The notes under the pieces: generated by a model
What the model was told of the DNA's origin: nothing
The model's database searches: none
What the model saw: the letters and a program-made list of their open reading frames with translations, nothing else
Translations under genes and position numbers: made by a program
Shown: in pieces, positions 3,750-61,302 of the stretch
How the letters are laid out: each line of letters opens with the position of its first letter
Position numbering within the stretch: the stretch's first letter is position 1
Source: Lepidodermella squamata
Taxonomy: Eukaryota; Animalia; Gastrotricha
Direction: 5' to 3'
NCBI GenBank assembly: GCA_047495785.1
Contig: JBLDXI010000033.1
Location: 2,728,001 to 2,792,000, forward strand
Length of the DNA stretch: 64,000 nucleotides

Positions 3750-4897
3750 ATGGAACTGAAAGACTTGAGTCCTATTCGTGGAATATCCCCGTGCGACCCG
3801 TGCGACGATGTCGAAGACAGTTCATCGACTGACAATTACGCGCATAGCTACACAAATGCGAATAACCAAAAATGGACGCGTCACTTGTTATATTCCTGTG
3901 GAGCTGCTGTCATTGGCAGCTCGTTTTTATGTGGCTATAGCTCGTCGGTTGTAAATGCACCCTTCGAACAAATGTCCGAATTCGTAAATCGATCATTCTG
4001 GGAGCAAGACAATAAACTGCTGTCTGAGCAGGAGCTTGACGTCCAATGGTCCCTTGTTGTGTCCCTGTTCGTCGTCGGTGGCGTTATAGGATCCTGCTGG
4101 TTTCCCGGCTACATGGCGGACAAGTATGGCAGGTAATGCGCCTTTTTGGCCCTATTATAAGATTTCGCTAAATCGAAGATTCTTTTTAAAAGAAAATTTT
4201 CCTTGTTGCTGAGCTCTGCATTTCCGATAGTGGGAGGAATTCTCAGCTTTATTGCGCCTTACACCGATAGTTACCTGCCGCTCATGATCGGCAGAGTTAT
4301 TGTAGGACTTCATTCAGGATTCATCATGGTAGTTGCACCTGCGTTGCTTGTAGAACTGGCTCCAATTCGACTCCGAGGCGCATGTGGAAGTTTCCATGAG
4401 CTCGCCTCTGTTACAGGAGAGGCGGCGGCAAACCTGATTGCCCTACCCTACATGCTGGGAACAGAAAGTTTGTGGAACATCTTGTTTCGTAAGTAGTTTT
4501 GCAGCTCCGCATCTAGTTCACTAAGAAATTATTATACCTAGTTATGATCGCAGTTATAAGCTTTGGCCATGCTGTGATGTTGTTTTTTGCATCGGAGAGC
4601 CCAAGGTGGCTCGTCGATGTCGGCCGAGATGCAGACGCCCTGAAAGGTTTGCCGAATGAAAGTAATAACATGATTCGTTTATCTTAACTGAGGATAGAAC
4701 TGAGGAAATTACGCCAGTGCCACGATGAAGTGATATATGACGAATTTCACGACATGAAGCGTCAATCAGTTGCTGAAGCTCAAGCTGCTAAAGAAATATC
4801 CTGGTCGCAATCGATAAGAGAGCGTCAAATATGGTGGCCACTTTTTCTTAGCATTAATTTGCACTTTTGTCATCAGCTGACTGGAATTGGGGCTATT
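3750..4897 (+). pseudogene. GLUT transporter copy 2, 5' half (TM1 to start of TM7), interrupted after HQLTGIGAI
   Basis: Collinear with copy 1 with introns at equivalent positions (GYSSSVVNAP, DKYGR, ELAPIRLRGACG, ESPRWL, HQLTGIGAI); homology stops at 4897. Confidence 0.88.
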
Positions 4898-4902
4898 GTT
4901 AC

Positions 4903-5366
4903 AGGCGCAAGATCCAGGCTCGCATCAGCGATTACGAAGAGACCATTGAGAACTTGCTGGCTAAGATTTCCGCGCTCGAAAAGTCGAAGCACAAGCCCCA
5001 GGGTAAGATTGAGGACATGACCGTTGAAGTTGAGCGCGCTCAGGCTTTCGCTTCTCAGGCTGAGAGGAAACAACGCCAGATCGACAAGATCATTGGCAAT
5101 TACAAGAACAAGCAGCTCGCCGACGAGATCAAGGACTTGGTCGACCAGCTGTCCGACGGTGGCAAGTCGATCCACGAGACCGAGAAGGCCTGCGCCGCCT
5201 CGAGCTCGAGAAGCAAGAACTGCAGGCGACTCTGCACGACACTGAGGCTCAGCTCGAGACCGAGGTCGCTAATATCCAGCGTTCGCAGATCGAGATCGCG
5301 CAGTTCCGCGCCGACATCGAGAAGCGCATCGCCGACAAGGACGAGGAGATAGATCAGCTGCGCTAA
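4903..5366 (+). pseudogene. Myosin heavy chain/paramyosin rod fragment (intronless, internally deleted, frameshifted)
   Basis: RRKIQARISDYEETIENLLAKISALEKSK...KQRQIDKIIG, then NKQLADEIKDLVDQLSDGGKSIHETEK and, after a frameshift near 5190, RRLELEKQELQATL...IEKRIADKDEEID: typical myosin tail heptads; GC-rich codons. Confidence 0.85.
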
Positions 5367-5424
5367 TTGTTTTTTCACTCGCCCCTTTTCACACTTCGAG
5401 CTCTCAACAATGGGATTTATGCTC

Positions 5425-5448
5425 AATAAATAAATAAATAAATAAATA
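5425..5448 (+). repeat. (TAAA)n tract, resembling a retroelement 3' tail
   Basis: aataaataaataaataaataaata directly after the myosin fragment and ~60 bp of unrelated sequence. Confidence 0.6.
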
Positions 5449-6344
5449 TGGACTTGCTGTCAACGCAACAGCTCGAATCTCATCGAAGCTACTACTAGGT
5501 TCTATTACATCTACCACTACAACGACTTGGTCCGCATCGACTACATCAGCAATGCTTACGTCGACAATTGCGACAACAACTACTAGCAGTTCGCCAAGCC
5601 ATCTCTCAGCGCGCTTGAAATCGCTGCGAATAAAAACATGCGGGAACAGCCAGCTACCCCTAATTCGTATCTCTCGTAGTCGAATTGATCATTTCAATAA
5701 AATTCCCTGATAATTCGATAATGAGATATTAATAAACAGTATTTGGAAACAGGTTTCGCTTGTTATGATTTGTCTTGAGGTGCTAATAACATATCCTGGT
5801 TAATTTTTTTGCCTGAAATATAATTGAAATAGCAATATCGCCAAGCCAGAATTTTCAATGTCAGTTGACAGAACAATGATGGTGAAGAAACTGTCAAACT
5901 GTTAATGAACTCCCAAGTCCTCGGAGTACTCGAGTACCTACTACTCCTCAACAAGTCCCGATTTGATAAATGCAACAGGTCTCTTTGAGAAACAATATTT
6001 CAGGTAACCATTATTCAGCAGCTTTCCAACTTGGCGAGTAATCGGGATCGAGGCCTCCATTATTACGTAGCAGGTGGGAACTCAACTGTAAAATCAAATT
6101 AACTCCAAAAAGTCGAGGTTCAATATACAAAAAGGTACGTTTTAATATAAATTAATCATAGAAAAAATCATAGCACCGGGCAATAAATATCTGATCAAAT
6201 AATTATCAATTCACTGCTTTCTTATAACAAGAAAACGAAGATTAGTAACGGCTCATACAATCCACAGACTCAATGAGAATAACAATAACAAGTCACGTGA
6301 CATCACAAGTCGACGGCGATTATGTGCGATCGAGGCAGATAGGA

Positions 6345-7087
6345 TCAAATGATTGACATGCTTGAGGGTGGCGTCTTATCAGAAGAGGCTTGAATGTAAA
6401 GTCTGCAAATAAAATAACTGTTAATAACAGCACAGAAAATATGTTACAAGTAACTCACCGAAGAAATCGTCGCGCATCTTCCCTTTCTTTATCTAATTGT
6501 CGACGAAGCAGTTGGATTTCACTAAATGAAAAAAATTAATGAAGTAGTTATATGAAAAAGGTGCATCAAGTGCATAACTAACCGTTCAAGAGCATCGATT
6601 TTTTTGTCTCTTCTTTAAACAACAGACAGGAGAACAAATGTACTTATGCTAATTAGTATCGAAGACATACCCAGCCAAATCGCGTTTTAGATGTCGATTA
6701 AAACTAATGAATAAGGTTACGTTTAGTGATAAAAATGATTAAGGTTAAAAATAACCTACCTGACCAGCTCGTCCAGTTCTCTGCGTAGCCTAGGTGCAAA
6801 GAAAAATTAATCTTCTAGCCGCTTCTATTGTTAAAGCTCACATTATGTTACTTGTTTTTAGGCCTGCAGCCTCTTGTGTTTGGCGATTCAGTTCAGTCAT
6901 TAGACTAGTAAAAAATATATAGATTATATAATTTGATTAACAACTATCTTCTAGTTACACTTACAACTCAGCATCATCAGATATCTTGCCTATGACGTTG
7001 GTGATGTCCCTATGTGAATTGTAACACCATAAATATATTTTGCTAATAATGAGTAATAGGGCATTACGTCAAATTGTTTTCAGCCAT
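6345..7087 (-). CDS. Micro-exon coiled-coil protein, 113 aa, 8 coding exons (7087-7068, 7009-6965, 6904-6842, 6789-6760, 6703-6671, 6612-6583, 6521-6459, 6402-6345)
   Basis: Manual splicing at GT-AG sites gives an uninterrupted ORF MAENNLTDITNVIGKISDDAEFLMTELNRQTQEAAGLKTSNIMLRRELDELVSFNRHLKRDLAGRDKKIDALEREIQLLRRQLDKEREDARRFLRLYIQASSDKTPPSSMSII*; all 7 introns are phase 2. Confidence 0.8.
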
Positions 7088-7201
7088 TGCGACTGGACGA
7101 ACAATCAATAAGCAAACAGCTGTAAAGTATATTAAAAATAACAACATTAACAAAGTATAATAAGAACGCGGGTTGCAAAGACTACAACTCAGATGTTAAA
7201 A

Positions 7202-7270
7202 ATTAGGTTGAAGAGTAGGTTCAGGATTAGATTTAGGGTTAAGGGTTAAGGGCTCTAGTAGATTTTAGGG
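7202..7270 (+). repeat. Degenerate TTAGGG-like tract
   Basis: ttaggttg...gtaggttcaggattagatttagggttaagggttaaggg...ttttaggg. Confidence 0.45.
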
Positions 7271-8047
7271 AATCTATTTAAAGGAACCTGATAAATCTAT
7301 TTTTATGCAATTTTGTAATTGTAATTCTACTTTGACAGCTACAGTAAAATCCGGAAGAAACCAGAGGTCAGGATCTATAATAGAAGTAATGAGGAAAGAT
7401 TTTGATCCTCACAATTAAGGCCAATTCAAATAAAGGAAATCTTTCGGCTAATATAGACCAATTATTAGACCGTATTTCAAACTCAAACTCAAAATTTGCT
7501 TATTTCACCGATCTTTTGCACCAATTAAACTATAATGTTAACAATCCATAATTGAAATAGGTGCAAATGACGGAACGAGCGACAGCATACAACGTTTCTA
7601 TAACAACAAGACAGGGTACCTACTTCTGATCAGCAGTCAAGTCCGGAACCCCGAATTCAAAATTGGCGCCTTAAATTGTATGAAAATGTGTTACTCTAAA
7701 TGTATTACATTATTTAAAAAAAATTAAATATTCATTTATTTAATGTCAATAATTTCCTTTTTCTGAAAAAATTTGCCACGTGGCAAGTGACAAACGTGGA
7801 CGTGGAAGTAGACTTGCTGTGCATTGGTATGGTTGCTGCATGGTATGGTATGGGGTATGGTTGCTGCGCATTGACAGTCTAAAGTTTAAGAGCGAGCGGT
7901 GTAGATACAACGCAGGTATGCATCATCATATTATTATAAATTTTCCGTAATTTTCCGTTTTTTATTTCTCCAGCTCAACTTACCTTGATTCAGATTAATG
8001 CGACTCCTCGACCAACTTCTTAACTGCATCATCTAGTTATCTGCTTA

Positions 8048-9188
8048 ATGACATCTAGTTCACCTGAAAACAGCTTAGAGACGGAAAATCTGAGCTCAAG
8101 GTAGGAGTGAAGCAATATCTAATATTGTTTTTTGACTGATATAATTTTAGGCGGTGAAATTTGTTGTGGTCCGTGCCTTGTTTAACTTTTTCAACAATGT
8201 ATAAGGAATAGCGAAAAGAAGCCGAAAAAGGAGAAGCTTCGTCTCAGGTCGCTACCGTTCAACCACTGCCTCAGAAATCGTCATTCGATGGCAGACCATT
8301 TAGCCACCATGACGACAGTTTAATCAGCTTCCCGGAACCTCAACCTGGCGAGGAAGATTTGATTCTCGCAGCTGATTCTCGGTGCGAATGTGGCTGATGT
8401 TTTCGACCCACTGGCGTTTTCTGACAATTCGGTCTCCGATCTGTTGGTTGACGCCCCACCCTCTATCCCTTTGTGTAACGAACCTGCAGGTCCTCAATCT
8501 GGGCACCAAAACGCAGCCGCACGAGTGCCATCTTTTGACTATCGAACATCCAGCCTCGACCCATCGTCAGCAATCGACTCGGCGATTCGGCGGTTCTACG
8601 CAACTACTGACCGCAAACATGACAGGCGTGATTTCATCCGACTCTTACGGCATTTGTCGCTGTTGTGTAAAAAGTCGGACGTTGTCGGACGGGTGTACTG
8701 CTCGGCGTCTCGTTGGATTAACATGGCTCAACTTGGTCCTAACGAAGCGCTACCTTTGGACGGAGACCCGCTTGAAATCTACTCGAAATACCTCGCTGAA
8801 ACGCCGCTGTTCATCAGCCCGTCCGCGTCATCGCCCCACGCTGTCGAAATGGAGAACATCATTCGAAATGTCGTACAATCTACCCGGTATCTCATGCTGA
8901 TGAACACCGTAATTCGATGTCCAATTGACCTCATTCATCCCTAAGCCCAGTCGATTTCGAGAAAATCGTGGGGTCGCGTCATCTCATGATGGCGGACGAC
9001 ATGTCATTACGGTTTTACGCATCTGGAACATGGCACCGGCGTATTACCCGATCTGCCAAAATGCAATGGTGGCATCGCCCTTTGTCGTTCTGTTCCTCAA
9101 TCTACGAGAAGGAGTAGGTGTCGAGGAGAACCATGCGCCAGATCAAAATGCTAAAAGTCATGGTTCTGAAGGTAATTTTGATATTTAA
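8048..9188 (+). pseudogene. Orphan, probably disrupted gene (main ORF 8390-8944, continuing in another frame to ~9170)
   Basis: Splice-like sites (donors 7916, 8101, 9172; acceptors ~7973, 8150) and coding-like composition, but stops and frame changes; no recognisable motif. Confidence 0.35.
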
Positions 9189-9319
9189 TTTATTCCGGTT
9201 ATGAATTCTTTGGTGTTTTGAGGAAAAATTTACACTTAAAAAATTTGCTTAGCAGTAGTTGTAATTCAGATCAGCTCCGTTCTATAAAGATGTTGATACA
9301 TCGAGTCATTCTCCAAAAT

Positions 9320-11675
9320 CTTCGCGATAAACGCTAGAATAGTGGATATATGTGATATGAACTTGGTGATGCAGTTAGTCAGTGAGCTGGAATTACCGGA
9401 TCTGGCGATTCAATTGGCGATAAGATTGGAAAAAGAGCCAGTGGTTCCGCAAAGCCGATAACATCATCTCGAACAAAAACGAAGGTGAGGGTTTCTACAC
9501 AGATCACTGGTTTATCGACCTGTTGCATTCACTCTGATGATCACGAGTCGATCGGATCCATGTATGCTGTTAGTCCGGGCGACGATGGTAACGGAAGAGT
9601 AACGGAAGAAAAAGCCGAGTTTACGCCGACTGACATTAGCAGAAATCACGAAATCATGCGTTCATTTTTCATAAAGAGCAAAGCCAGATGTTTGCGTGCA
9701 GCTTTATTCCTTGGATAATTCCAATTTGCAACAATTTCACGCCGATATCTGCGACGGCAAATTTGAGGTCGTTAGCTTTTCGAAAAGTAACAACAAGGAA
9801 AAGAAGCCAGTCAAAGCTATGATGCTGTGATATTCGCATATTTTCGAAAGTATGCGAAGTGACGAAACAAAGCTTCCAGTTTCAACGTGTAGTGTAGTGG
9901 GAAATGCAGCGGAACACTTAATGCCAGTTTGCCGCTTTTCCGGTGAATCGCCGTCGCGTTTGCTTGTCTTGTTATCGGCCTATTGCCTATTGCCTATCGT
10001 TGGAAAGTTGAACAGTAACACTGACGATTTGTTATGCGAGTCGTTGAAGTCTATGTAGATTATCAGATGAGCAATGAGTCAATGAGATGAGAACAGTAAG
10101 CCTAACAATGCTAAAACATACAGCATGCGGGGGCTAACTGTACTTTGCTGCTGACTAAGGCGTGGCAGGGTGAGCACGGTTCCTCTCGGTTTAACATCGT
10201 CGTCAACCAGGATATATTGAATTCTTAACATAGTATTCCCGACGATTTTCCAAAGCTAAAGCCGATCGAAATGTTGCAGAAGCGTTAGGTAGATGGCCGT
10301 ATTGTCCGTTCCGTTAGTTTAGCTAAATAGAAATATGGGAATTACCGCTTACGAATTACGCCGACAGATTTTGCCAAATTGAACGATTTTGTTGATAAAC
10401 TTCAGGCCAGTGGTGAAGCTTTTTGTCAAAAGTGACTTGTCGTATCACGCAACGTAGATGTTCATTAATGCTGCGATGCCTTCGTGTTAGAGTGAGCTAG
10501 AATTAGAATTGTTTACGGCTGTCGGAATTTTTGACTCAACTTCATTTCCATGGTTACTACATCTTTGCCGTCTTCGACTCGACATCGACAGTTCTGTCAC
10601 ATTTGAATTCTATGTTGTCACAATTGAAAACAGGCAGTTAGAATTGGTAGAGGTTGAGAAGTTTACAGATGACGAAGTAAAAGATAGGCCCGCTGTCGTG
10701 CTGGCACAACATCAAGATGACGTCATGACCATGGGTTCGGTCCTGATATTTTTCCAATCAAAAGAAGAAGCTCAGGCGTGGCAGTGTGAGCACTGTACGG
10801 TTCCTACGGTGAATCACCTTCGAGGCTATTGGTATTGTTATTTGCATATTGCTATGCATTCGGCAGCAATGATTATGACCTCGCTGAAAAAGTAGGTTAC
10901 TGCGGCATTTATGGCCTTTTATTAACAGATGGTTCAGATGGTGTATACACCGGAGAATCACACGGATGGGTCGACGTTGTTCCAGTCGATGTGGGTTTCA
11001 TCAGCGTTAAATAGATGGCCGTATTGTTCGTTCTGTTACTATAGCGATAATCAAACATCATCTGAAGACCATCAGCCAGTGCGTTCAAATGAGCAAACTA
11101 AGGAATCTAAGTTGGGGCTGAGCCAAGAATTTACCAGCTGGAATAATTTTACTGGAAAAAGGGCCAGTGGTTTCGCAAAGTCGACAACGTCACCTCGTAC
11201 AACGAAGCTTTGTCCATATATCCTAATTCTGATAATCACGAGTAGCTTGAAAAAGTGCCACCTCGCATGCGACTATTTAGTAAGTCATATGAAGCTGGGA
11301 TTATCGATTCGTCAAAATTTGCTAATTAGTAATAATTTCCGGGTGATTGAGCAACTGCAGAGCTCGCTGCGCCTTTTATGTAGCGACCCTGTCTTCGAGG
11401 CTATTGGTATGGTGGAGTTGCCATATTTGCAAGCAAATCGCGCGTAAATTTTTCATAAAGAAGAAAGCCAAGTGAATGCAGTCACTTCAAGTGAATGAAT
11501 GACTCATTATGACCTCGTTGGAAAAGTCGTCCGTTATACAGATTATCGAGTTGCCATATTTCGAGTCAAACTATTATCGAAAGTATGCGAAGAGACGTAA
11601 CAAAGCTCGATGCCTTCTGGTTTCAACGTGTAAAAGAGTGTTGCTTCAGCAACAAACAAGAAATCACGAAATGCC
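9320..11675 (+). repeat. Scrambled mosaic array of ~25 short diverged fragments homologous to the 13798-18991 gene
   Basis: E.g. 9412-9526~17199-17309; 9683-9818~17842-17977; 9907-9987~18270-18350; 10643-10803~16949-17108; 10807-10893~18304-18390; 11084-11143~14734-14793; 11251-11322~17987-18058; 11332-11393~14949-15008. All on the same strand and non-collinear. Confidence 0.92.
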
Positions 11676-12586
11676 AGCTAATTAGAGTGAAAGTAACCAT
11701 TATTAAGTCGGAAATGAGTGTGAAGTTTGTGTGGTCGTGTGTATCCATATAAAATTTTTTGTCGATTTCATGTATGTTTTGCAAAATTAATAGTTTTATT
11801 AATTTTTTTCGTAGGTTGTCATAACTCGCTCTTAACGATTTCGAAAGCCAGGGCTACGCAGACCGAACGTCGCTTGAAGCGCTGAAGTAACCTTCTCAAT
11901 GTTTTGAGCAACGTCAGCAACAGCTTTGATGCGAATGATAACATCGAGTCCAATGCGGCTACTGCCATTTTCATCGAATCTGTGACACCATATATCATCA
12001 ACGTGAGGTTGCAATGTTGATGTCAATCGTTTGCAAGTGCTGAAATATTGTCAGGTTAATTTTTACTTTTTGATGCATTTATGATCTCGTCTGAAGCTGA
12101 GATGTCGCTGATCAAATCCAATTACGTTAGCAAAGCCTGTTGATTGGAAAAATTGTTATGATGCCTATTCATGTCGTCAATTTTTTACAAATATTTGTTA
12201 TCTGCTGAACTAACTGAACTTTTGTTGGGTATACTAATGCTGAAACAGACCGAATTGACGTGACATTTTGCTACCAATTTTTACTTCGAGCAAACTTACG
12301 TTCTGAGCTCAAACTTTGAGATTGTGTTCGTAAATAAATGGATTAATAAATTTCAACGTTATTCCCTGGCTATTGATTGATGTTGAAATATTGAATAAAC
12401 GTTGCACAGTAAAAAGAGTGAAGTGCTTTTGTACTTGATGTATAATAAAGAATAAAAACTATTGTTGCAAACTTTGACGATTTATTTTTGAAATATTTGG
12501 AGCTGGCCTATCAAGGCATTTTCATTGGAGCTGAAATTTTGTTGGAAATACGGCATCGGAAAACGGCATATGATAGACCGACACTA

Positions 12587-13030
12587 CAGGGTGTTTCATA
12601 AAAAACCGAACTCCTATAAAAATGTACTGCTGCTGCGCGTTATCGATTTTTTTCGCAAACAGCACGGTCACCGCAAATTTTACGCATCAGCAAATAAACT
12701 GCCATTTTTATTTAACTGATGGCCCCTTTCAAACGCAGCGCGACGAAGTCAGAAACCTCACCGTTCACAGGCACGTTCTAGGGAAACCCGAGCGCGCAGT
12801 GTCAAAGCGCCGTTATCCAACCGCACACAGGCCGGCTAAAATTGACAGAAATTGACCGCAGGTTAACCGTGAATTCACCGTAGAAATGCCGTATTCCTGC
12901 CGCTTTTTCTCCTCGCGACAGCAACAAATAACATGGCGCATGGAAAATCGATAACGGCAGTACTTTTCCTATAATATTTATGCATGCTGATATAAGCCTT
13001 ATCTCGTACCGTTTTTTATGAAACACCCTG
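12587..13030. mobile_element. Tc1/mariner-type MITE (444 bp), TA target duplication
   Basis: TA|CAGGGTGTTTCATAAAAAA ... TTTTTTATGAAACACCCTG|TA terminal inverted repeats; no transposase. Confidence 0.88.
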
Positions 13031-13451
13031 TACGCGAACAATGTTTACTGTAATATCCGACACGGTACGGATTCCACACGGGTTTGATATACGTGAAGAG
13101 TCAATAACAGTCAGGCGGAAATGATAAAAATAACTCCTCATTTTATTGCTATAACATTTCGGTATTTTTAATGCGACACGCAGGCCGCTTATAAGTTGGT
13201 ATGCGCACATTCCCCAGGTGAAAGCGAGATAACGAGCAGAGAAAGCGCATGAAAAACATTTGACAAGTATTAAGATCACTGATGAATGAATTTCGAGATT
13301 TACCCACCCGTCGTGAAATTGCTGTCACGGGTTGGCTCATGAGCAATCTGGCGGTTAGCATCAGGCAACGGCGAAGCTGCTGCGCTGCGCAGTCGACGCC
13401 AGCGCCGATTCGTCGTTCAGCGCATTGCGGCGCAGTAGTATTGGCAGCGCG

Positions 13452-13703
13452 TTAAGCCGACGAACTAGCAGACTGCTGCGCTTGAACTGAGGGCACGGGC
13501 GAGCGGGAAACGAGCTCGAACGTCGTTGAAAGCTTACCGTGCAAGCCGTATTTCTCGCTGTGTATCTTCTCGAATAGCTCCGCGATGTGATGCGTCGACC
13601 CGGCTAAATGCGAATGAATCAAATTTAAATCAGAAAAAATAAAAGTGCACTTACTCATTTCTAGAAGGCTCATTCTGTTTTAAAGATTCCTGTCGATGGC
13701 AGC
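13452..13703 (-). other. Possible short spliced transcript divergent from the nuclease-like gene
   Basis: Minus-strand GTAAG donors (13654, 13537) and acceptors (13703, 13604, ~13487) spaced as ~50-nt introns; reading frame ambiguous. Confidence 0.3.
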
Positions 13704-13797
13704 TGAAATAATACAATCGTGATGTTATAACTTGCATTTCCTCTTATTATTAGTTGCTTATATATCCCTAAATATCGCAATATTTTCGTGTCGAAGA

Positions 13798-14872
13798 ATG
13801 GCGGATCCTGCTCATGTGATACCAGAGCTTAAAGTTTTCACGAAGAAAGTGTTCATCGTATGCTGGAGGGAAAATTCGCGTAAGGTCGGAGGCCACAATG
13901 TTTGCAATGTGACACTATCAGTACACTCGGATTCATCGAAGCGTTGCGCAGGGCAACTGTGGTCAACTAAAAAATCTCAATTGGATAAGGTTCAGTTCCT
14001 AGGCGTGATCAAGACAGAAGAGTTTCAAACTCCTCAGTGCATGCAAACAATCACGGATTTCTTACCCAAAACTGACCTTTACGTTGGTGGGAAGCTGTTC
14101 GGGATAAAGATCGAACTGGATTCAGCCCATGTTCACAATTTCACCATCAAGGACGATGTACGGCTCGAGAAGCTATTCCCATATCGGCATAGCATGCAGT
14201 TCGCAAATGTTTGTGATCTCTACAAAGCTCCGAAGCCTGTGAGAAACATCAATGTTGCTGCCTTGATTTTGAATGTTGGCGAATGTAAACCAGCGGTGAT
14301 ACCGGACAGGAAGCATGCAGAGATGTTATGCGAATTCGAATTTGTCGATTTAATTTGCGGCCAGACCTTCTGTAAATCAAACGAGACCGTGTTTTTATGG
14401 ATTGCTTTATAAATTTTCTATAATTATAGGGGGTAAAGCTTGGGGCAAGGAATGGCAACTGTTTTTGAGCGAATACAAAGGAAAACCTGTTATTCTGGAT
14501 AGCGCAAATTTTGCTGTCTACACTAATGGCTACGGCTGCAGTGTCGCAACAGACAAATTAACAACGTTCGATGTTGGGCCAACAGCCCAGCAGTTCCTTC
14601 CCGCTATCCCTGTTATTGCACCTTCCGTTGAAGACGGCATTTCGCCGAAGCGGGCCAGATACGCCAGTGGGCCATGCGCTCGAACTGCGTCTGAGAGCAG
14701 AGTTATCGACCAACAAGACCAACAGCAAACTAATTCAAATCAGCAAACTAAAGAATCCAAGTCTGGGCCGAGCCAGGAATTTGCCAGCTGGAAAGACGTT
14801 TTACAGGCGGCTGCCATGTTTCAATGGCCAGTCGATGAAACTGTTGAAGCAATTTTTGCAGATGATTCCTAA
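13798..14872 (+). CDS. OB-fold ssDNA-binding protein (RPA70/MEIOB-like); either a separate gene or the N-terminus of the downstream nuclease gene (1-nt frameshift near 14867)
   Basis: Exons 13798-14371 + 14430 onward give INVAALILNVGECKPAVIPDRKHAEMLCEFEFVDLICGQTFWGKAWGKEW...KGKPVILDSANF...TDKLTTFDVGP, resembling the MEIOB/RPA70 OB pattern (INV.A.V..VGE.K....DR....CE..L.D.....W). Confidence 0.6.
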
Positions 14873-14939
14873 ACATTCTAAAACTCGTTAATGTTTTTTT
14901 TTATTGTTGCTGTTGCAATAAATTTTAAATTATTTATAG

Positions 14940-17900
14940 ATGAATCCTAATTACCCTTTAATTGAGCAACTGCAGAGCTCGCTGCGCCTTTTATGTGGCG
15001 ACCCTGTCCCTTGGGACGAGCTGGAAAAAGCCTATCGGAGTTTAAGCGTACCACCGGAACGGGGAGCCCATGGGTTTGTTGCCGTTGATTATATTTTTTA
15101 CCGAATAAAAAAATTACCGTGTTATAGCAAGGTTGAGGCAGTACTATCACGCGTTGGTGTGACGTTGGACGTATTGGAAATCGGTGCATCACTCCGAAAT
15201 GGCATTAAATTCCTGTTTGCCACGCTCGGCAACCTGTTTGCTGTAGCTTTCGTTGGAACCGACGGGCAGTTGGTTCAAGTCCACTGCTTTGTGAACGCAG
15301 AAGCCGCGCCCATGCTGCCGAACTTGACGCTTAGCGAGATGTTGGCCATTTGGCACAGAGCCCGGTTTTATGTCTATCAGGTTCTACAATAATATTCATG
15401 ACAATAAGCAATATTCTAAAAGCTAACCTTTCCAGATGACAATCGATGACATCCTGGTGAGTAAAACTGCCGCCGAACTGACAGTCGCTCATTTAGCCGT
15501 GGCGTCAGATTTGGAACAAACGTTCAAACTGCTCTATCGTTTCGGCGAAAGGCTCAGGTTTCACGCGATTCCTGCACTACAACGGCGTCCTGAAATGACC
15601 GAAGTGGCTGCAAGGATTCTTTGGCATCTCGGTTATCGTGAAAATGCACTTCGAACGGCCTTGGCCAATCCGAACACGCCTAAACTAGTCACGTTTGTAA
15701 GTTGAACACTTTTCCAAGTTCCGAACGAATTCCAAGTTTGATGTAACATTTTCAGCTCAAGCATCCATCAGCTCGTCCTCATTTGTTGGCATTGTGTCGT
15801 GATGACGAAACGTGCCGCCTTAAAGCCTTCCAGCTTGACCTCATCCAAGTTGAAGATGTCGCTGATCCAACACCTCAGATCGCGAATTCGGCCAACGCAG
15901 ACGACCCGCCACGCTTGGAGTCACCTGAAGTGGCTACGTCAAACGCGTCAAACGTGCCTCTTACGATCCCGCCCAGTTCGATCATTCGATCAGACGAACC
16001 GCCACGCTTGGAGTCACCTGGAGTGGCCACGTCAAACGCGTCAAACGTGCCTCTTACGATCCCGCCCAGTTCGATCATTCGTCAGGTATATTTATAATAA
16101 ATTTATCTATATTCAAAATTACAAAAACAATCTTTATCAACAGACCGCAACGCCTCGGCCCTTAACTGGTTCGATTTCACGTGAAAACGTTACCTTCACT
16201 CAAGTGGTTATGAAAACCAAACCAACTTCGAACGCTGTAAGTGAGGAGGCCGCGCTGCCTCGTGAGCCAGAGAATGTGCCATCTACTTCAAATGGAATAG
16301 ACCAGCCGGCGAATCGAAAGGTTTGCAACAACAACAACACAACTTTTTGCATTGTTAACAATATTGAATTCTTAACAGAGTATTCTCGACGATTTCCCTA
16401 TGCTGAAGCCCATCGAAATGCTGAAGGCGACGAAAACACTGCTCAGCTCAATCAACAAAGAACATGTCGAGAAAGTTGACTTCGCCAAAATGTATTTGAA
16501 CGCACGTGAAGATTTTGGCACAGCGGTTGACAATTCAATTCATGCTTCAAAGCTCCGGAAATGTTCATTCCCCAGTAAGGCCATGATCGACAAGCCGATC
16601 AACATGATTTTGGCTTATCATGAGGAGCTGGGATCAATGTATGCCGTTGGACCAGGGACGGATGGAAACTGCGCTAGGCTGCTGAATGGTCCCAGCAACA
16701 TTCCAGCTAGACAGTTCGAAAATTCGCTGAATTTGGCTGAATTTTTAACGTCACTTCACTTCGATGGTTACTACATCATTGCCGTCTTTGACTCAACATC
16801 TCCATCGACCTTTACAATCGAAAATCGTCGAAGTGTGGAAACCTTTGGTCAGCTGAAAAACTGTCCTAATGGTTACTACAAAGATATTCGCAGAATTGCC
16901 GAAAAGCATCGTTCTCGGATAGTGAGTTTCGAATTCAGTTACGATGACTTGGAGGAGGTGGAGAAACTTGTTGATGGCCAACTAAAAGATAGGCCCGTCG
17001 TCGTTCTGGCGCAACATCAAGATGACGTGATGACCACGGGTCTGGTCCTAATTTTTTTTCAAAATGGCGAGGGAGCCCAGGCGTGGCAGTGTAGGCACTC
17101 TACAGTTCGTCTCGGATCAAAATCGTCGCCAACTAGATTGTTTTCGCCAGCAGAAGCAGGCAAGGTCAAGCCTAAGTGGTCTATAATTAAGCGCCTCGAT
17201 TGGCGTTACGATTGGAACAAGGGCCGGTGGTTTCGCAAAGCCGACAACATCACTTCGTACAACGAAGCTGACGGTTTTTACACCGATCATTGGTTCGTTG
17301 ACTTGTTACCCTCGTTCCGTGATGGCCGCTTAACATCAACTGATGCTGCCAAGTACAACGATTTCGTTGACAAATCGTTGATACTCCAGTACATTTCGAA
17401 GAATACCAAATCCGAATACATCCGCGATTGGATTTTCACCTGTACTCGCCGCAGGCCAATGCTGAAACTTTTCGGTAAAAGCGACATATCGTTCCATGCC
17501 ACCTTAACGTTCGTTGACGCTAATGAGAAGTCGAAGGCCCTTACTGCCGTGACTGAATCCGGCGACTCAATCCGGGCCGCGTTCGGGAAAAACGCTAAAA
17601 TTCTCGACATGAAAGACATGAATTCGGCTATGCAGTTAGCCAGCGAAAAGTCGCCAGATCCTGGCTTACTACTGCTTGACCTGCCTAGACACATCACTCG
17701 CGAGGAGCTCATCAGCTACCTACCAAACGGCTTCGATGTACACTTGGTGGAATTGCCTTGTTTCCAAGCAAATCACGCGTACATTTTTCACAAGGAACAA
17801 ATCCAAGTGAATGCGGTCATGGAAAAGCTGTCAAATGAGTGGCCAGATGTTCGCATTCAGCTTTATTCGTTAGACAATTCGAAATTGCGGCAATTTCAAG

Positions 17901-18991
17901 CTGACATCCGCGATGGCAATTTTGAGGCTGTTAGCTTTTCGAGAGGTAGCAATAAAGAAAAGAAAACAGTCAACGCCAAAGCGCCAAAATTGCCACCTCG
18001 AGTACGACTTTTCAGTAAGTCATATGAAGCTGGTATTATCGATTCGTCAAAATTTGCCTCTTCATTGCACGATCCTCTTACTGCGTACGCAGTTGTCGAA
18101 AGTTTGCGTGGTGCCGAAACAGAGCTCGCTGCCTTCTGGTTTCAACGGGTGGTAGAGTGCTACTTCAGTGGCATGTGGGATGCATGCACCTATTCGTTCC
18201 TGAGGCATCAATACGGCGATGCTTTCGTGGAAGGTGTTACAGCCGCGAGGTTCAAGCTATTGAGATATACAGCGGAACACTTGATGCCATGTTGCCGAAT
18301 TTCCGGTGAATCACCTTCGAGGCTCTTGGTATTGCTATCCTCATATTGCCATGCATTCTGCAGCACTGATTATGTCCTCGCTGAAAAAGTCGACCGTTAC
18401 ACTGACGACCTCTTTTCAGGTCGCATGACGCCTGAAGTGAGATATGGTAAGAAATGGTCTCCGCTCTTCCAAGGCGTCGAGTCCAGATTCGTCTTAAGCG
18501 GTCTTCATCCCTGCCAATGTTGCAGAAATTACTGCTGTGAAACTAACCACTGCTCCACTCTGGTTTTTCTATCGGAGGTTACCAAAGGACAGCCAGTAGG
18601 CTACAGCGGCACCTATGGTCTGTTAATAACAGATGGTTCAGGTGGTGTTTATACAGGAAAATCCGCTGTGACCTTGAGGCGTGCCAGCAGCCACAAATCG
18701 CATTCGCTCCAGACAATGTCGAATCCAATAGCGGCAAGTAGATGGCCTTATTGCGCGTTCCGCTACTACAGCGATAACGCATGGGCAAGAATGCCTTTCC
18801 GCCTCTTGTTCGAAAAGGCGATGTGTATGAACGTCGCCGGTGATCGAGAGCGATTTCTACGAGAAACTTTTTTCAATGCTACCAACAAGCCTCACCCAGA
18901 CTACCTCGCGATCCACAATATCGATCCGAACGCGGTTGTTAACGAGGACGACGAGTTTCAAGACGACGGTGATGAAGAGGAGTACATGTAG
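14940..18991 (+). CDS. Large orphan protein (1273 aa from 14940) with three RRM-like modules, a Cys cluster and a C-terminal GIY-YIG-like endonuclease; exons 14940-15380, 15436-15696, 15756-16085, 16144-16320, 16379-18991
   Basis: Phase-0 GT-AG introns keep the frame open. GIY-YIG-like SGTYGLLITDGSGGVYTGKSAVTLRRASSH...LFEKAM...FFN (~18605-18880); RRM-like LLLLDLPRHITREELISYLP...HAYIFH, SLILQYISKNTKSEYIRDWI...HATLTFVDANEKSKAL, GLVLIFFQNGEGAQAW; CQCCRNYCCETNHC; acidic tail. Confidence 0.75.
15898..16081 (+). repeat. Two near-identical 93-bp (31 aa) tandem coding repeats
   Basis: cagacga.ccgccacgcttggagtcacctg...cccagttcgatcattcg starts at both 15898 and 15991. Confidence 0.92.
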
Positions 18992-20215
18992 CCATCGGTT
19001 CAACATACGACGTCTTGTGTGTGACGTTTATCGCCCAGTTTGTTTCACTAAGACTGTAAAGTAATACATTTGATTCATTTGATGAGTGCTATATTCAATA
19101 GCTAAGACTGTAAAAGTTGCAATGAAATAAAGATAATTGGTTTATAACCTACTGCTGATGTTGTACTGCAGTGACGTGAACGAAGCATCGGTAAACATTT
19201 TCGATCGACCAAGTTCGAGCGTTTTAAACTGACAAAAATACACAAAATAGGAATATTGCGATATATCATGCGAACAAATTCGAACCTGAAATCACCAGCA
19301 GCAGCAGCAGCAATTATTAATGGTTGCCAGTAGTATAATGAAACGTGTCGCGATGGTTTGTTCAAATTCGAAGGCAATGATATACATCAATAGGGCCGCA
19401 TTAATTAAGAACATTAACAGGCCATCATCATCGTCATCATGCCAGTAACTACTTTCAATAACAGCCTATAGAAATAGGTTCATTTCATGAGACGTACAAT
19501 AGGACAATATGGACTCATTCTGCGAGCCGCGGCTGACTATCGTACGTCTAAGGATGGTTGGTTCTGCCATTTCTAGCAGACGTAAAAAAGTTCATCAGTT
19601 GAGTTGAGTTTAACTGACGTGAATTGGCTTTTATTAGCTATCACAGCCTTCACTTCCACCGGTCGATTTCATTCAGCTTCAGCTTGATTTGCATAATTGC
19701 CTCGTTTGCGTCATTTCTTGCGCTAGTTTTCCCCCGGGGCGGCCTAAAACCTGACGAAAAATCGATCGAAATTGGCGCAAAAATCAATGACAAGAAATCG
19801 GGGTTACACTGTATCAGTGCTCCGATTTTTTTTCGTGACTCGAAAGTGTCTGCCACTGGAAAGAAATTGCAAAAAAGTGTACGCCAATTTGGAAATTTCT
19901 TAAAAAGCTTGATTTTTCGGCGATTCGCCTCTGAAAATGCGAAAAATGAGCATCTCGAAGCTGGTTTTGTCTCCAAATAGGAAGGAATTGTGGGTCTCCT
20001 TCTAACTTCCTTCCGGACAGATTACGGATTCCAGATCATTGAACATTGAAAATGGGGCCTAATGAGGATGGGTTTAGGAGAATAGGAATAAAAGGAAAAT
20101 GGATAATCGCGAGCGAAGAGAGCAACATTTTCTGAGCGTGGTCCAGTGGGCAAAAATCGGAACACTGCACTGTATTAAAGTACAGGGTGTTCAAGAAATA
20201 ATGGCTAGATATATA

Positions 20216-20636
20216 TATATGTCGTATCGTATAAGGCAATCCCTCCAATGGCCGATAGAGATATCTCAATGAGCAATCGGAAATTTACTTTCTGACTGAT
20301 GTTTTCATCAGCCTTCAGGTTATTGAATTATGATCTATCACATATTAAAGAGCCCGAATAGCCCTATCGATCAGACTTTTAATTGATTAATAAAGAGTTT
20401 AAATTGATCCAGAAGGCCAGAAGACAGTTACAGTGAAAATGCGCTAGCTTTTTAGAAACACATAAAACTCATAGATGGGGAACAAGTTATTAGGGATTCT
20501 GTAATCTTGCTTGGTTTCCAAATAAAATAAAATGATTAAAATAACTGAAAATGACATTGGGAACAATTCGGATTGCTCATAGATGGATATCTCAATCGGC
20601 TAATGGAAGAAAATGCCTTATACGATACGACATATA
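20216..20636. mobile_element. MITE with ~70-bp imperfect terminal inverted repeats
   Basis: tatatgtcgtatcgtataaggca...atgagcaatc mirrored by gattgctcat...tgccttatacgatacgacatata. Confidence 0.8.
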
Positions 20637-20849
20637 GCATTGAACTTTGAACGAGTGACATCTTTTGTACTGGACACGCATTTTCTTGCTCGTCTTACTG
20701 AACTTACTGAACATCAATTTTTCAGGTTCGAAGGTTCGAAATACTTTATCCCTAAAAATGACTGAATATTGGCGCGAAACTATTGAAGAAAGACGTCCAG
20801 TTCCTTTCTAAATTTGAAAATTCATATTGAAATTAAGCATCGCACGCTT

Positions 20850-21707
20850 TTCTAGCTAGCCAGTAATCCTTATGAGCCCGGCCATTTTACCGGCCTTATA
20901 TACCGGCCGGCTTGTAGTAGTATGATGTATGCCATAACAAGCGAGGCGAAGCCGAGCTATCTATCAGCTTGCTTATTATAAATTAGCTTGCTTTTTGCTT
21001 GCTTCTACTAATACTACTCCTACCAGTTTTGTAATATATATGCTTGCTAATAATGCAACTTGCTTAACCGAGAGATTTGCAATTGCTTGCTATAAATTGA
21101 ATATAAATCGCCTAAATTTAGTATCCCTAGATAATAATCAGCTTGCTTCTTACAAACTTGCTATTGTCTATTGTCTTGCTCTATCTACTTATCTAATATC
21201 AAGTTGCTAATTATCAAATAGCTTGCTATCTGCTTGCTCTTATCACAATACTTATTATCATGTATATCATCTTGCTATCTCTTGCTATCTCTATCTCGCT
21301 AATAACTAACTTGCTATCTAAGTATTGACTTACTATACACTATAGATTACTCATATTTCGCTTGTTATCATCTAGTATATATAAACTAGAATCATCGCTT
21401 GCTATAAATTACACAGATACCGCTAGCCATGTTTGTAACTTGCTATGGTAGCTTGCTTTTAACTTGCACGTTCTTTAGCTCTTCTCGATCGCGCTTGCTA
21501 GCGATATATTCGGTTGTCAGCGACGCTTGCTTCAAAAATCTGCATCGTCTTTTTTTTACATTTTGTTTTAAAATTAAATAATAAAGTGTTTTTAAATTAC
21601 GGAAAATATTTTTCTTATTTTATTGACGAAACTGTTATAGGTGCTCTATGAGAACCCCGGAAACCGGCGGCTTGCTTAGCAGCGGCTTGCTAGACTTCGA
21701 GCTTGCT
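20850..21707 (+). repeat. Dispersed same-strand CTTGCT motif array (~20 copies) at the right end of the insertion
   Basis: gcttgct/cttgcta recurring every ~20-60 bp between 20967 and 21707; also gcgaggcgaagccgagc at 20941. Confidence 0.65.
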
Positions 21708-21754
21708 TATCGCACCAATGCCAGTCAGCTGGTGTATTATGATTATGTATTATT

Positions 21755-22554
21755 ATGTATTATGCTTCTTTAGTAATGGTAGATTCCGGAATGGATTCTG
21801 ATACAGCGGAACTCGCAAACTTCGGCCTCAGCCTCCTTAACATTGCTGCAACTGGCTTGTCATCAGCAATTGTAGATAGGGCAGGAAGGCGCATATTGAT
21901 GCTAGCAGGCGTAATGGGCCTAGGCATTTCACTTGTCGGGCTGATGATAGTGCTCAGTTTCGACGTAAGCACGAAAATGAATCCATCTCTAGCACAAACT
22001 TATTGTTTTCTGATTTTGAAGGCCATCTATGGAGTCATAGCCGTTTTCGCCGTATTCCTTTTCTTTTTCTCAATCGGCCCAGGTAACACAATTATCTCGG
22101 GGAAGTAACGGTTTACATCGTTCCGTTTACATCATTAGGACCTGTACCATACATTATGACAGCTGAGCTGTTCCCACCGAGCGCTCGGCCGATGGCGATG
22201 AGCCTTTGTATCCTAATTAATTGGTTAACCAATCTGGCGGTGAGCATGCTATTTCCTATCGTAAAGGTGTGTTTATCCTTTGATTTTTTCGCGATAATAT
22301 TTAATCAAGAGTTTATCAAGGGCTGCATCGGCATTTATGCTTTCGTGCCATTCATAATTATGTGCGCTATTGAGTTTGCGATCATGTTCCTCTTTTTACC
22401 GGAGACCAACAACGTGCCAACTTCAGAGATCAGCGAAATGTTTGCGCCTGGAAAATCACTGTTTCATTTTCGGGGAAAAGCCGCACAGGCTTTCCAATAT
22501 GCCGAGCATAAGGACCCTAAGACGAAATCTGACGCTGACAACAATTATTTATAA
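21755..22554 (+). pseudogene. GLUT transporter copy 2, 3' half (rest of TM7 to TM12 and C-tail)
   Basis: MYYASLVMVDSGMDSDTAELANFG, DRAGRR, GPGPVPYIMTAELFP, LPETNN; introns at ~21965, 22083 and 22267; frame intact. Confidence 0.88.
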
Positions 22555-22957: not shown

Positions 22958-25900
22958 TTAGGAAATGTTGGCGTTGACGCCATTTTTCTTCAAAGCTTCG
23001 CGGAGTTGCTCCTTCACAGCGTCAGCATTGTCCTTTGGCAGCGGCGGCGCCGTAAGCTGCGTCGAACCTTTCTTCGCACTGCCCGCATCCGAGATGTTAC
23101 TCTTAGGCGCAGCAGTATCGGCACTCAGCCCTGTTCCTTCGTAGATTAGCTTGTACTTGAGCGCACTCTCAGGTTTTCCAGGGTCACTAAAAATGTCAAG
23201 TTCACCTCATGATTATCAATATGGATTTCTAACCTTTCCCAATAGAACAGATACTCCGTTGCACCAAAACGGCCCTCTTTGACAGCAGCTCGCCTGATAA
23301 CGGCTGTATTCGCGTCTTTGTCGACCAAAATAGATCGCATATTGCCGAGCGAGACTGCCTGTAGCACGAACTCGTAGCCATCTTTAGGTAGCTTCTTTGC
23401 AGCTACTTTGCGCGCGCCCGATTCACTTCGGCTGCCCTCGATCGTCATTCGTAAACCGATCGGCCGAGCAACAGTATCATCCTCGGGGCCGTACAACTTG
23501 ACGTAGTAATCGATGACTGATAGCAAACATTTAGAAGTTATTATTTAATTAATTTTGTGAAAAACACTTACATTGAGTGGTGGGATGTTTAAACCGGACA
23601 ATCGGGTGCTCGCAGCAGCCGTCATTTGGTTTGCCGCACAGGTGCGCAAAGTTGAAGTGAAGCTGTTCCCCGCTCTCCCGATCGGTGGCATATACATCTT
23701 TTATACACCATGTAGCAGAAGAGGCATCTTCGACGCGAAGTTTCAAAAGATCCTTCAATTTCGCCTCCTCTAGCGTGAACACCTGTCCCTGGGTCGTTAC
23801 CGTTTCGGCCGGATTCAAAGTCAGCGTCTCCTTGGCTTGAATGCTGGCGCTAGATCCGCTAAACAGAATTATGGTCACAGGCCGCGAGGGGCCAGGTTCA
23901 GCAGTTGTGATGATTCGACAGTCGAAATTGCCACTGAAATGTTCCGGCGGATTGTCAAGCACTCGTGGTTGGTCCCAAACAGGCGTAAAATCAACATAGA
24001 TTTTACGATCGCCGGTTCCGCTGTCCAACCAACGGAACGCAGGGAACACTAGTACCGGCTTAGAGATGTCCCCAGCATCGCGAACTTGACATTCGTTGAT
24101 AAACCAGCCGAGACCACGACCAGTCGATAGATGGCCCAAACCGATAGTTTTGACAGTACCCACTGAAACAATAAAAACATCGCAGATATCGCGTGCTCCG
24201 CGCTGAAACATTTTCGGCCTGTCGCTTTTAAGAAGGAACACTTTTCCGGAATCTCCCCACGTGCCCTGGATATTCGCGTAAACAGCTGAATCTGGATCTG
24301 CGCGTTCTTTGTCACCAGTGAATATGCACACCTCGTAACCAACCTCAGCAATCGGAGCCAGATCAGGTCTTATGACACCGAAATCTGTACTGCCAGCGCC
24401 ACCCGTCGCGGCACTAGCCTCAAGAGCACGTATCGGCGCAGCGAGCAGCTCTTGCTTTGTCTTCGTGTCAGAAAGGTTAACCTGATCTATTTTCCAAGAA
24501 AAAGCTCCTTCACTCTGCACAGCGACTCGAAGTTTAACTATCGGACCAATAGCTCCGAAAGACGTCTGGAAAGGTTGCGGCTTCGCCAGGTTACCGGCTA
24601 GTTTCAGCAAATCAACCGGGTCTGATTGCTTGCCGCTTGCTGAGTAAGCGGTAAGTGTCAGCGCTGTAGCTTTTCCCGATGGCGCATTATTCACCGTTAG
24701 CTGTACTTTGTAGGAGCCTGATGATGGCTGCGGTCCTGGCTGGAAGCGCCTGTCGTATTGAAGCGCAACGCCTGTCATTTCCGTTTCCGGATGCTTGAAT
24801 TTCGTCACTTGCCCACTCTGCACGAATTGCACATCAGAGAATACTGCCTCGAAAACATCGTGCTCTGTCCTGCGAATTCGAATCCGCTTCACTTGCCAGT
24901 TGCCACTGGAATGCGCTGACTCGGCGAAACTGAGGTGCGCTTCTTTGATATCGCCAAGGTCAACAGCAGGCATGAAAAAAATGTCCGTAGTACCCGGCTT
25001 GCCAAACACCTGGCCGCCACCAGTCTGCGAACGCGAACGGAGCAAGTAACGTTCGCCTGTGTCGCCCTCAGAACCAACAATCATGCATTTGACACTGCCG
25101 TTTTTCAAGCCACCGCTCGCTTTAGAAGCGCCTCCTGTTTCGATAATCAATATGTAGGGCAAAGTCACTGGCGTGTTCGGTGGGGCATTCGATTTTGCCG
25201 CAACAGATTTGTTGCTTGCACCAGAGGTGGGCGCAGGAGGCGGCTGAACAACGGCCAATTCGCGACACAGACTGCCATCTTCGGCTTCGGGACCGAGCCA
25301 CCGGTCCAGGTAAAATAAATATTGGAAAGCTGTTGCTCCTGAAGCGTCCGTCAATTTTACCTATATGAAGACATTTATAGATACATGCAAAAGTCTAACT
25401 AATGAAATCCTCACCCAATCGAGATTGAGCGGGTCGGCTTCCCCTTCCGGCGAGTACGTGTCAATAGAAATTTTGCGCAGCTGACCGATGTCTCCAGAGT
25501 TGTATTCGAATTCAGCCACAGCGTTTGCAGCAAAATTCTCTCCAGCTCTGACACCATTAGAGAGCTTGGCTCGTTTCGATTTACCGCGGCTGCCGTACAT
25601 TGTCATGTATACCTCGGTGTTGTAGCCGGGTAGGGTGTCTGGACCTGACTTCGTTTTCACCTTCCATTTTTGCGGAATTTTGGGAGCCTTCGGGTCAAGT
25701 TTGGTCAGCTGATCAGCGGCAGGTATTGTATCGACGAAACGCAGAGTCCGTTCAATCTAGTAAAATCACAAAAAACTAAAGACTTTTCCCATTCGAATAA
25801 TCTCCTTCCTTACATGCCCATCATCTTCCCAAGGGTCCAGCCATCGACCGCAAGGGAATATTAGTGAATTATCAGGATCGGTCGATGCTGTAACTCTGAT

Positions 25901-60886: not shown

Positions 60887-61302
60887 CAAAAGGAGCTGAG
60901 CGCCAACGCAGCTGACCTCCGTGAATACCGCGCGGAGTCAAGTCAAATTTCAAGTTTATTGAACGATCTGTTATTATACAAAAATATAGATCGTTCAATT
61001 TTCTATCCACTGAATATAGGTCTCTCGCTCGAAAAATCAACCGGAAAATGATAAGTTAGTAAATGAATTAATGTCATGTGCGCGCACTCTGAAGCGATGT
61101 GCGCACTAGAATACGCAATCTAGCATGGGCGTAAACGTTTTCTTGTTTATTTTTTTTATCGAGAAACCTGTTATGTTCAGTCAATAGAGAATTGAACGAT
61201 CTATATTTTGCTATGAAGACAGATCGTTCCATGAACTCGACATTTGACTTGACTCCGCGCGGTATGCACGGAGGTCAGCTGCGTTAGAGCTTAGCTCCTT
61301 TT
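60887..61302. mobile_element. MITE / foldback element with ~140-bp imperfect TIRs
   Basis: aaaaggagct..cgcagctgacctccgtg.ataccgcgcggagtcaagtcaaat mirrored by atttgacttgactccgcgcggtat.cacggaggtcagctgcg..agctcctttt. Confidence 0.85.

Follow-up and report, generated by a model that had tools for sequence, protein, structure and literature searches.

We analyzed a window of 64,000 nucleotides (nt) from the gastrotrich Lepidodermella squamata (GenBank assembly GCA_047495785.1, contig JBLDXI010000033.1, positions 2,728,001 to 2,792,000 of the forward strand), in which an array of short gene fragments adjoins, on the same strand, a unit of two genes without detectable homologues, denoted here A/B (Table 1; all coordinates are those of the window). 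About 28 pieces of the A/B unit (13798-18991), each 14-167 nt long and 72-91% identical to it, make up the region 9303-11673. All of these pieces share one orientation, whereas their order is close to random. Most likely, the array has no function and is left over from gene-family turnover; diverged paralogues of the neighbouring gene appear to have supplied its material.

The exon boundaries of genes A and B were placed by reading 13600-16480 by eye together with the list of open reading frames (ORFs). The introns of gene B are 55-59 nt long, all with GT..AG borders and all in phase 0, the 58-nt intron of gene A likewise has GT..AG borders and a consistent phase, and the bulk of its last exon is an 863-amino-acid (aa) ORF (16400-18991) that ends in an ordinary stop codon (18989-18991), with an AATAAA signal about 140 nt downstream. 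The two genes are only 67 nt apart (14873-14939), with another AATAAA 15 nt before the ATG of gene B and a splice-acceptor-like TTATAG directly in front of that ATG, a spacing that could reflect an operon-like or trans-spliced arrangement or, alternatively, a 97-nt intron fusing A and B in frame. A transposon identity of the unit was rejected given the absence of terminal repeats and the presence of the ordinary stop codon and AATAAA. In exon 3 of gene B, a recent in-frame duplication has left two tandem 93-nt units (15898-16081) with 97% identity, so that a proline- and serine-rich motif of 31 residues is repeated.

No Pfam family matched the 863-aa ORF, nor was there any match exon by exon at E values up to 10, and a search of PDB sequences returned a chance match alone (E = 0.65). 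A word-index protein search with the 863-aa ORF and with gene A exon 1 gave no match, and neither did a full HMMER scan of 1.84 billion protein representatives (0 matches), look-ups of the exact product of the gene, or a protein scan of viral contigs; a degenerate 30-mer of the best-conserved motif had 0 matches in metagenome, prokaryote-genome and viral contigs. The models produced by AlphaFold2 without an alignment were unusable (predicted local distance difference test, pLDDT, of 34 and 36), with a weak hint of a beta-alpha-beta-beta-alpha-beta pattern in residues 420-492 (pLDDT 57-71). An earlier note on this DNA, made from the sequence alone, had assigned RRM, GIY-YIG and OB-fold labels to parts of the unit. 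These labels reflect resemblance by eye and found no support from Pfam, PDB sequences or structure prediction. A motif of the form G-x-Y, about 10 residues, V-Y-T-G-K/E-S can be read in gene B and in an array copy; the C-terminal piece of gene B had no match to the GIY-YIG nuclease domain in Pfam at E values up to 10 and none in PDB sequences, RRM and OB-fold had no Pfam match in the exon-by-exon search at the same threshold, and gene A exon 1 lacked any homologue.

Comparison of 8000-12600 with 12601-21000 by blastn yielded 21 same-strand matches of 32-167 nt with 72-91% identity (E values from 1e-3 to 1e-33), and tblastn and repeat searches revealed further shorter pieces as well as mini-snippets of 14-21 nt; the count of about 28 combines the blastn, tblastn and mini-snippet matches, all of which are +/+. 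All pieces come from the A/B unit, with no unrelated host gene inside the array, and neither an A/B-family piece nor a second copy of the array was found elsewhere in the window. In the older sub-array (9303-10034), out-of-order pieces of the gene (17582, 17196-17307 and 16619-16669) lie before a collinear run; the beginning of the younger sub-array (10352-11051) includes 63 codons without a stop, together with a GIY..VYTG-like motif. The duplicated gene segments listed in the earlier note all exist, displaced by a few bases at most (blastn E values down to 1e-33), the peptide that it quoted is indeed the translation of 10614-10802, and its observation that nothing in the array comes from the so-called OB-fold core was confirmed, with no piece from 13798-14714.

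Table 1. Map of the fragment array and of the adjacent gene unit
Feature	Coordinates	Strand	Description
Whole array	9303..11673	+	Same-strand pieces of 13798-18991, shuffled, non-coding; blastn, tblastn, frames, permutation test
Older sub-array	9303..10034	+	dS ~0.84 to gene; holds the sole long collinear run (gene 17770-18408)
Tight triplet	10158..10323	+	Gene 17079-17136, 16361-16426, 18731-18772; gaps of 2-3 nt between pieces
Intron-bearing piece	10214..10279	+	Matches gene 16361-16426
Younger sub-array, start	10352..11051	+	Gene 17327-17521, 16721-17108, 18304-18390, 18595-18663, 18708-18777
Most scrambled part	11065..11673	+	Gene 14715-14793, 17213-17269, 17986-18057, 14948-15008, 17745-17819, 18365-18405, 18093-18168
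Re-copied mini-snippets in most scrambled part	11393-11413, 11548-11570, 11659-11672	+	
Gene A, 338 codons	Exons 13798-14371, 14430-14872	+	58-nt intron; family is the source of one array piece
Gene B, ~1273 codons	Exons 14940-15380, 15436-15696, 15756-16085, 16144-16320, 16379-18991	+	Family is the source of nearly all pieces

The orientation of the pieces is strictly uniform (28 of 28 on one strand; chance probability 2^-27), and their order is nearly random, with 12 ascending runs compared to 14.5 +- 1.6 in random permutations (P = 0.10) and a mean jump between neighbouring pieces of 1019 nt compared to the 1058 nt expected at random (P = 0.34). A single six-piece collinear run (9542-10027) is longer than expected by chance (P = 0.03) and, from 9651 onward, corresponds to residues ~457-672 of the 863-aa ORF. 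Of the length differences inside this run, two (93 and 111 nt) are divisible by three, as expected of a diverged functional paralogue, and the third is a frame-shifting 8-nt deletion. The array is non-coding: consecutive pieces are in different frames, and the three frames contain 22, 52 and 47 stops. The mixed frames rule out a coherent mosaic ORF, and with the near-random order the array cannot be a series of collinear copies that decayed. The array lacks inverted repeats, which eliminates hairpin RNA as its product.

Sampling of the gene was less structured than the earlier note suggested. The proposed hotspots were not borne out, given that coverage of at least twofold extends over 298 nt of the large exon compared to 350 +- 63 nt with random placement (P = 0.80), and triple coverage amounts to 32 nt compared to the 66 nt expected. 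Nor did the bias toward one half of the gene persist, the covered length of the large exon being 692 nt in its first half and 648 nt in the second. What can be detected is an under-sampling of the upstream exons, which contributed two of the 28 pieces, 14715-14793 (gene A exon 2) and 14948-15008 (gene B exon 1), compared to 46% expected (P = 1e-5); lower conservation of these exons could also be the cause.

The divergence between the pieces and the gene is that of proteins under constraint. Across 446 aligned codons, the nonsynonymous (dN) and synonymous (dS) divergences were 0.144 and 0.569, respectively, and dN/dS was 0.25 (bootstrap 95% confidence interval 0.19-0.34), compared to 0.94 and 1.09 when the same alignments were read in the wrong frames. 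For a neutrally decaying copy of a neighbour that itself stays constrained, dN/dS of at least 0.5 is expected, a value that none of the 2000 bootstrap replicates reached; hence the donors appear to be diverged, constrained homologues rather than copies of the neighbour decaying neutrally. The even spread of differences over codon positions that the earlier note associated with neutral decay was not observed, the counts being 69, 59 and 120. The two parts of the array differ in their distance from the gene, with dS of 0.84 and dN/dS of 0.19 for the left part (9300-10480), and dS of 0.42 and dN/dS of 0.32 for the right part (10500-11650); between the two parts, at codons covered by both, dN/dS was 0.39. 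Together, as far as can be judged from the sequences, these values indicate that the donors belonged to at least two diverged paralogue lineages that were under purifying selection and were distinct from the neighbouring gene, in agreement with the proposal in the earlier note that several diverged functional homologues were sampled. A/B would then be an orphan unit whose family includes at least three diverged members shaped by purifying selection.

The same note had pointed to three sequence states that occur in both array versions of a segment and not in the neighbour. These states are indeed present in both versions and absent from the neighbour, but make a weaker argument than it may seem because such sites simply measure the neighbour's own branch: in a three-sequence comparison, 27 sites fall on that branch, and 38 and 14 sites are private to the two array versions. 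When the changes in the 87 codons covered by all three sequences were assigned to branches, the neighbour's branch showed 16 nonsynonymous and 11 synonymous changes (ratio 0.33), and that of the older copy, 22 nonsynonymous changes plus one stop and 14 synonymous ones (ratio 0.37). The private changes of the younger copy comprise 10 nonsynonymous or stop changes and 2 synonymous ones (ratio ~1.1), at 4.6% of the sites. There are three stops among the 446 aligned codons, and duplicates within the array differ from each other by 5-9%. Given the agreement among the private changes, the stops and the duplicate differences, neutral decay since the formation of the array can be put, roughly, at 4-5% per site.

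Several features bear on how the patchwork was put together. The piece at 10214-10279 contains the last 18 nt of the 58-nt intron 16321-16378 (17 of 18 identical) and continues into the large exon for its first 48 nt; the position of the intron was read from its GT..AG sites, phase 0 and the modal length of 55-59 nt. The template of this piece would therefore have been genomic DNA or unspliced RNA, which speaks against ordinary retro-copying. A processed pseudogene was rejected on the strength of this intron, together with the absence of any poly(A) tract noticed on reading the array and its right flank and of long flanking direct repeats. Aberrant splicing or back-splicing was dismissed as well because AG and GT occur at the piece ends at background frequency. 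At six sharp junctions, the pieces are separated by 0-3 nt or overlap by 3 nt.

Some of the copying apparently used the products of earlier copying. The filler between the larger pieces contains snippets re-copied from the array: 11393-11413 repeats 10818-10838 (20 of 21 identical), 11506-11527 repeats 10872-10893 (20 of 22), and 11548-11570 repeats 11415-11437, in each case with derived states that are absent from the gene. Furthermore, a 14-nt string with an out-of-frame 8-nt duplication is present at 9641 and again at 11659. Because such a duplication would not be found in a functional paralogue, some of the copying must have started from a template that had already degenerated, and the simplest candidate is the array itself.

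Had the pieces been joined end to end at random, their orientations would be mixed, and had they decayed gradually, their order would be preserved. Furthermore, about 25 deletions and 12 changes of order exceed what 4-5% of neutral divergence would allow at the general rates of DNA loss from pseudogenes; by this estimate, the time was far too short for the changes to have accumulated one by one. We favour, with middling confidence, the interpretation of the array as a non-coding mosaic pseudogene that was formed in one or a few orientation-preserving copy-and-switch events at the DNA level. Under this scenario, short stretches of at least two diverged A/B paralogues, which were constrained while diverging, would have supplied the pieces, the donors most likely being co-oriented, head-to-tail paralogues at or near the site. 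Serial replication slippage or template switching among these donors would have kept the strand orientation, with the same donor and the growing array itself visited repeatedly. The donors would have been largely destroyed in the process, leaving the 2.3-kb patchwork, which would then have decayed neutrally by roughly 4-5% per site.

Several observations weigh against this scenario. Microhomology at the junctions is 2-3 nt compared to 1.9 nt by chance (P = 0.17), and no long microhomology was found at the six sharp junctions, with the caveat that the neighbouring gene had to stand in for the true donors. When switching on double-stranded donors is primed by microhomology, pieces can become inverted as well, so the uniform orientation requires an additional assumption, either that the donors were local and co-oriented or that the templates were single-stranded. 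The window contains no donor paralogue, so local tandem donors are such an assumption; donors that once stood in tandem at this site fit the data equally well as import from elsewhere. Whatever the rooting, the synonymous counts of 2, 11 and 14 for the three branches across the 87 codons are incompatible with a molecular clock; a donor close to the family consensus is one possibility, and the sample is small. Finally, a fragment of a myosin gene nearby hints at a more general import of foreign gene pieces into this region. The combination of random order with strictly uniform orientation is an unexplained feature of the array.

The array and the A/B unit are located inside a 16.8-kb gap (4898-21751) that interrupts the second of two tandem sugar-transporter paralogues (3750-4897 and 21752-22554), at a position where the first (1069-2831) is continuous as exon 1914-2612. 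There is an ATT codon on both sides of the gap, and no in-phase AG acceptor was found to its right; either the split transporter gene is broken, or the array and the orphan unit reside in an unusual, giant intron of it. A few bases from the break, at 4903-5360 on the + strand, lies the myosin heavy-chain tail fragment (Pfam Myosin_tail_1, E = 7e-8), with an internal deletion of about 75 residues and a frameshift. Transposon remnants also lie in the gap: a 448-bp element resembling a miniature inverted-repeat transposable element (MITE; 12586-13033), with perfect 22-nt terminal inverted repeats containing ACAGGGTGTTTCAT, and a related solo end (20180-20213) that abuts an element of about 420 bp (20216-20636) with 34-nt inverted ends. 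The array itself fills the space between a group of + strand ORFs that ends at 9188 and a - strand ORF with AATAAA at 11795. On the + strand, 9189-12332 contains no AATAAA or ATTAAA (0 compared to 3.8 expected, P = 0.024), and five AATAAA follow at 12333-12451; the missing polyadenylation signals are a weak hint of possible read-through transcription. The ORF group directly upstream of the array (8390-9188, +; 184 aa and 87 aa) matches no Pfam family, does not resemble the A/B unit, and may be another orphan gene, with its 3' end facing the array.

Elsewhere in the window, the domains recognized in ORFs are ADAM/disintegrin, PLAT/LH2, doublecortin, bZIP, NGP1-type nucleolar GTPase and sugar transporter, and several of these ORFs run without interruption over long distances, up to about 600 codons. 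The best matches of the nucleolar GTPase, with no more than 40-45% identity, are scattered among many protostome phyla, including annelids, insects, nematodes, molluscs and chelicerates, as expected for an invertebrate that lacks close relatives in the protein collection. Within a long gene on the - strand (23549-35681), there are several PLAT/LH2 repeats and one doublecortin domain, and individual ORF stretches extend up to about 600 codons; a 415-nt self-complementary palindrome with ~75% arm identity was detected by self-blast at 60888-61302. Scans of the window for tRNAs and Rfam families gave no match.

Because the neighbourhood has gathered foreign pieces, models in which the array was captured from dispersed paralogues, in line with the capture of relatives suggested in the earlier note, stay alive, even if we regard them as rather unlikely. 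Here, a break would have been filled by repair synthesis hopping among ectopic family members (filler DNA), or the pieces would have been brought in by a Helitron or Pack-type carrier. The constrained donors, distinct from the neighbour, fit such capture, as do the location of the array and the gene within the gap in the sugar transporter, whose sister gene is continuous, the unrelated myosin fragment on the same strand with which this gap opens, and the proximity of the MITE and of the related ends at 20180-20636. However, neither terminal inverted repeats nor long direct repeats bound the array or the gene, and inspection of the array flanks by eye, with no dedicated Helitron scan, revealed no Helitron-type end. 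Transposon captures usually mix unrelated genes, whereas the pieces here all belong to one family, and dispersed double-stranded donors do not explain why all 28 pieces have the same orientation. That orientation, along with the random order, would follow from single-stranded sense templates if a reverse transcriptase had jumped between family transcripts to make a chimeric complementary DNA that was then integrated. Such an RNA-templated origin could also account for the strong bias toward the 3'-most exon and for the presence, on the same strand, of a fragment of myosin, the mRNA of which is typically abundant. We nevertheless consider it improbable: one piece includes 18 nt of intron, neither a retroelement sequence nor a poly(A) tract was noticed when the array and its right flank were read, there is no reverse-transcriptase ORF among the window ORFs scanned, and the lack of splice-site dinucleotides at the piece ends indicates that splicing was not the source of the shuffling. 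Alternatively, the array could simply be what neutral decay has left of an old duplicate, or of a few such duplicates, of the adjacent gene. The position of the array next to the gene, on the same strand, and the one collinear six-piece run agree with this idea, which is very unlikely all the same in the face of the low dN/dS, with no bootstrap replicate at the 0.5 floor, and the uneven distribution of the differences over codon positions; moreover, the near-random order would require at least 12 separate copies, and little neutral divergence has accumulated. An assembly artefact, in which the consensus was mis-built from reads of several paralogues, is hardly credible, given that assemblers do not yield shuffled 14-167-nt pieces with sharp junctions, that the unique flanking sequence is continuous, and that the duplicates within the array differ by amounts that fit real decay.

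A function of the array, either as a one-strand source of small RNAs that silence the family in trans or as a set of donor cassettes for gene conversion, also appears improbable. In one-strand clusters of PIWI-interacting RNAs (piRNAs), uniform orientation is a product of selection, and the lack of + strand polyadenylation signals across the array makes read-through conceivable. In plant siren loci, embedded gene fragments produce small interfering RNAs (siRNAs) that act in trans on related genes (10.1101/2021.06.10.447945), which provides a precedent for such a role. Against a functional array stand the lack of inverted repeats that would form hairpin RNA, the predominance of synonymous differences, as a result of which conversion would barely diversify the protein, the shortness of the pieces (down to 14-40 nt), which contain stops and are in mixed frames, and the apparently neutral private changes of the younger copy. 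The most specific version of this idea, to which we give quite little credence, is that the array is a selected one-strand archive of a lineage-specific, possibly nuclease-encoding and selfish family, which lies between convergent genes, is read through into long RNA and, once this RNA is processed, yields trans-silencing small RNAs. If true, it would be the gene-family counterpart of a transposon-derived piRNA cluster, and selection would explain the uniform orientation of the 28 pieces despite their random order.

A mosaic formed by copying and switching, the interpretation we favour, has partial analogues in several known systems. Filler-DNA or templated-insertion patchworks, like the array, consist of short copied stretches joined with little or no microhomology, and in both, the template is re-visited and the patchwork's own snippets are re-copied. 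Filler-DNA patches usually span tens to a few hundred bases and comprise few pieces of mixed origin and orientation, whereas the array spans 2.3 kb, with about 28 pieces from one gene family in a single orientation. A 'filler DNA' model has been put forward for gene-fragment capture by Helitrons (10.1101/2021.06.10.447945). Serial replication slippage, fork stalling with template switching, and microhomology-mediated break-induced replication share with the array the orientation-preserving deletion and re-copying, the shuffled order and the sharp junctions, but have been described for contiguous single-copy regions, whereas the templates here are diverged paralogues, and microhomology at the junctions does not exceed chance.

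Other similarities concern the content of the array rather than its assembly. In silent arrays of gene-conversion donors, such as chicken immunoglobulin pseudo-V genes, Borrelia vls cassettes and Mycoplasma genitalium MgPa repeats, truncated promoterless copies likewise lie beside one full-length expressed gene, and in the MgPa repeats, as in the array, pieces of two adjacent genes are mixed. Unlike these arrays, the one described here consists of very short pieces with stops and in mixed frames, and its differences are mostly synonymous; donor cassettes were accordingly rejected because the amino-acid-changing differences expected in variable regions were not observed (dN/dS 0.25). One-strand piRNA clusters, such as Drosophila flamenco, and plant siren loci resemble the array in being non-coding and packed with same-orientation fragments of multi-copy families, but the fragments of the array come from a host gene family, not from recognisable transposons, and were brought together by fine-scale shuffling, not by nested insertions. 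Pseudogene fragments left by birth-and-death evolution also lie beside a member of the family, on the same strand, and derive from once-constrained paralogues that are now decaying; in the array, by contrast, the order is not collinear, and the loss of size exceeds ordinary deletion at such small divergence. On balance, the locus fits best among mosaic pseudogenes, of which it would be an unusual variant.

If the array is a mere relic, which is the most likely case, it would be an ordinary by-product of gene-family turnover, and annotation should not call genes there. Even so, a single 64-kb window places an orphan gene in a family of what appear to be at least three diverged, constrained members. 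If the copy-and-switch interpretation is right, the array is a compact natural record of many-step, orientation-preserving template switching between paralogues. Neither ligation nor simple decay predicts a random order together with a uniform orientation, and the same holds for switching primed by microhomology on double-stranded DNA; given the complete genome, this locus could therefore discriminate between models of repair or might reveal a selected small-RNA locus.

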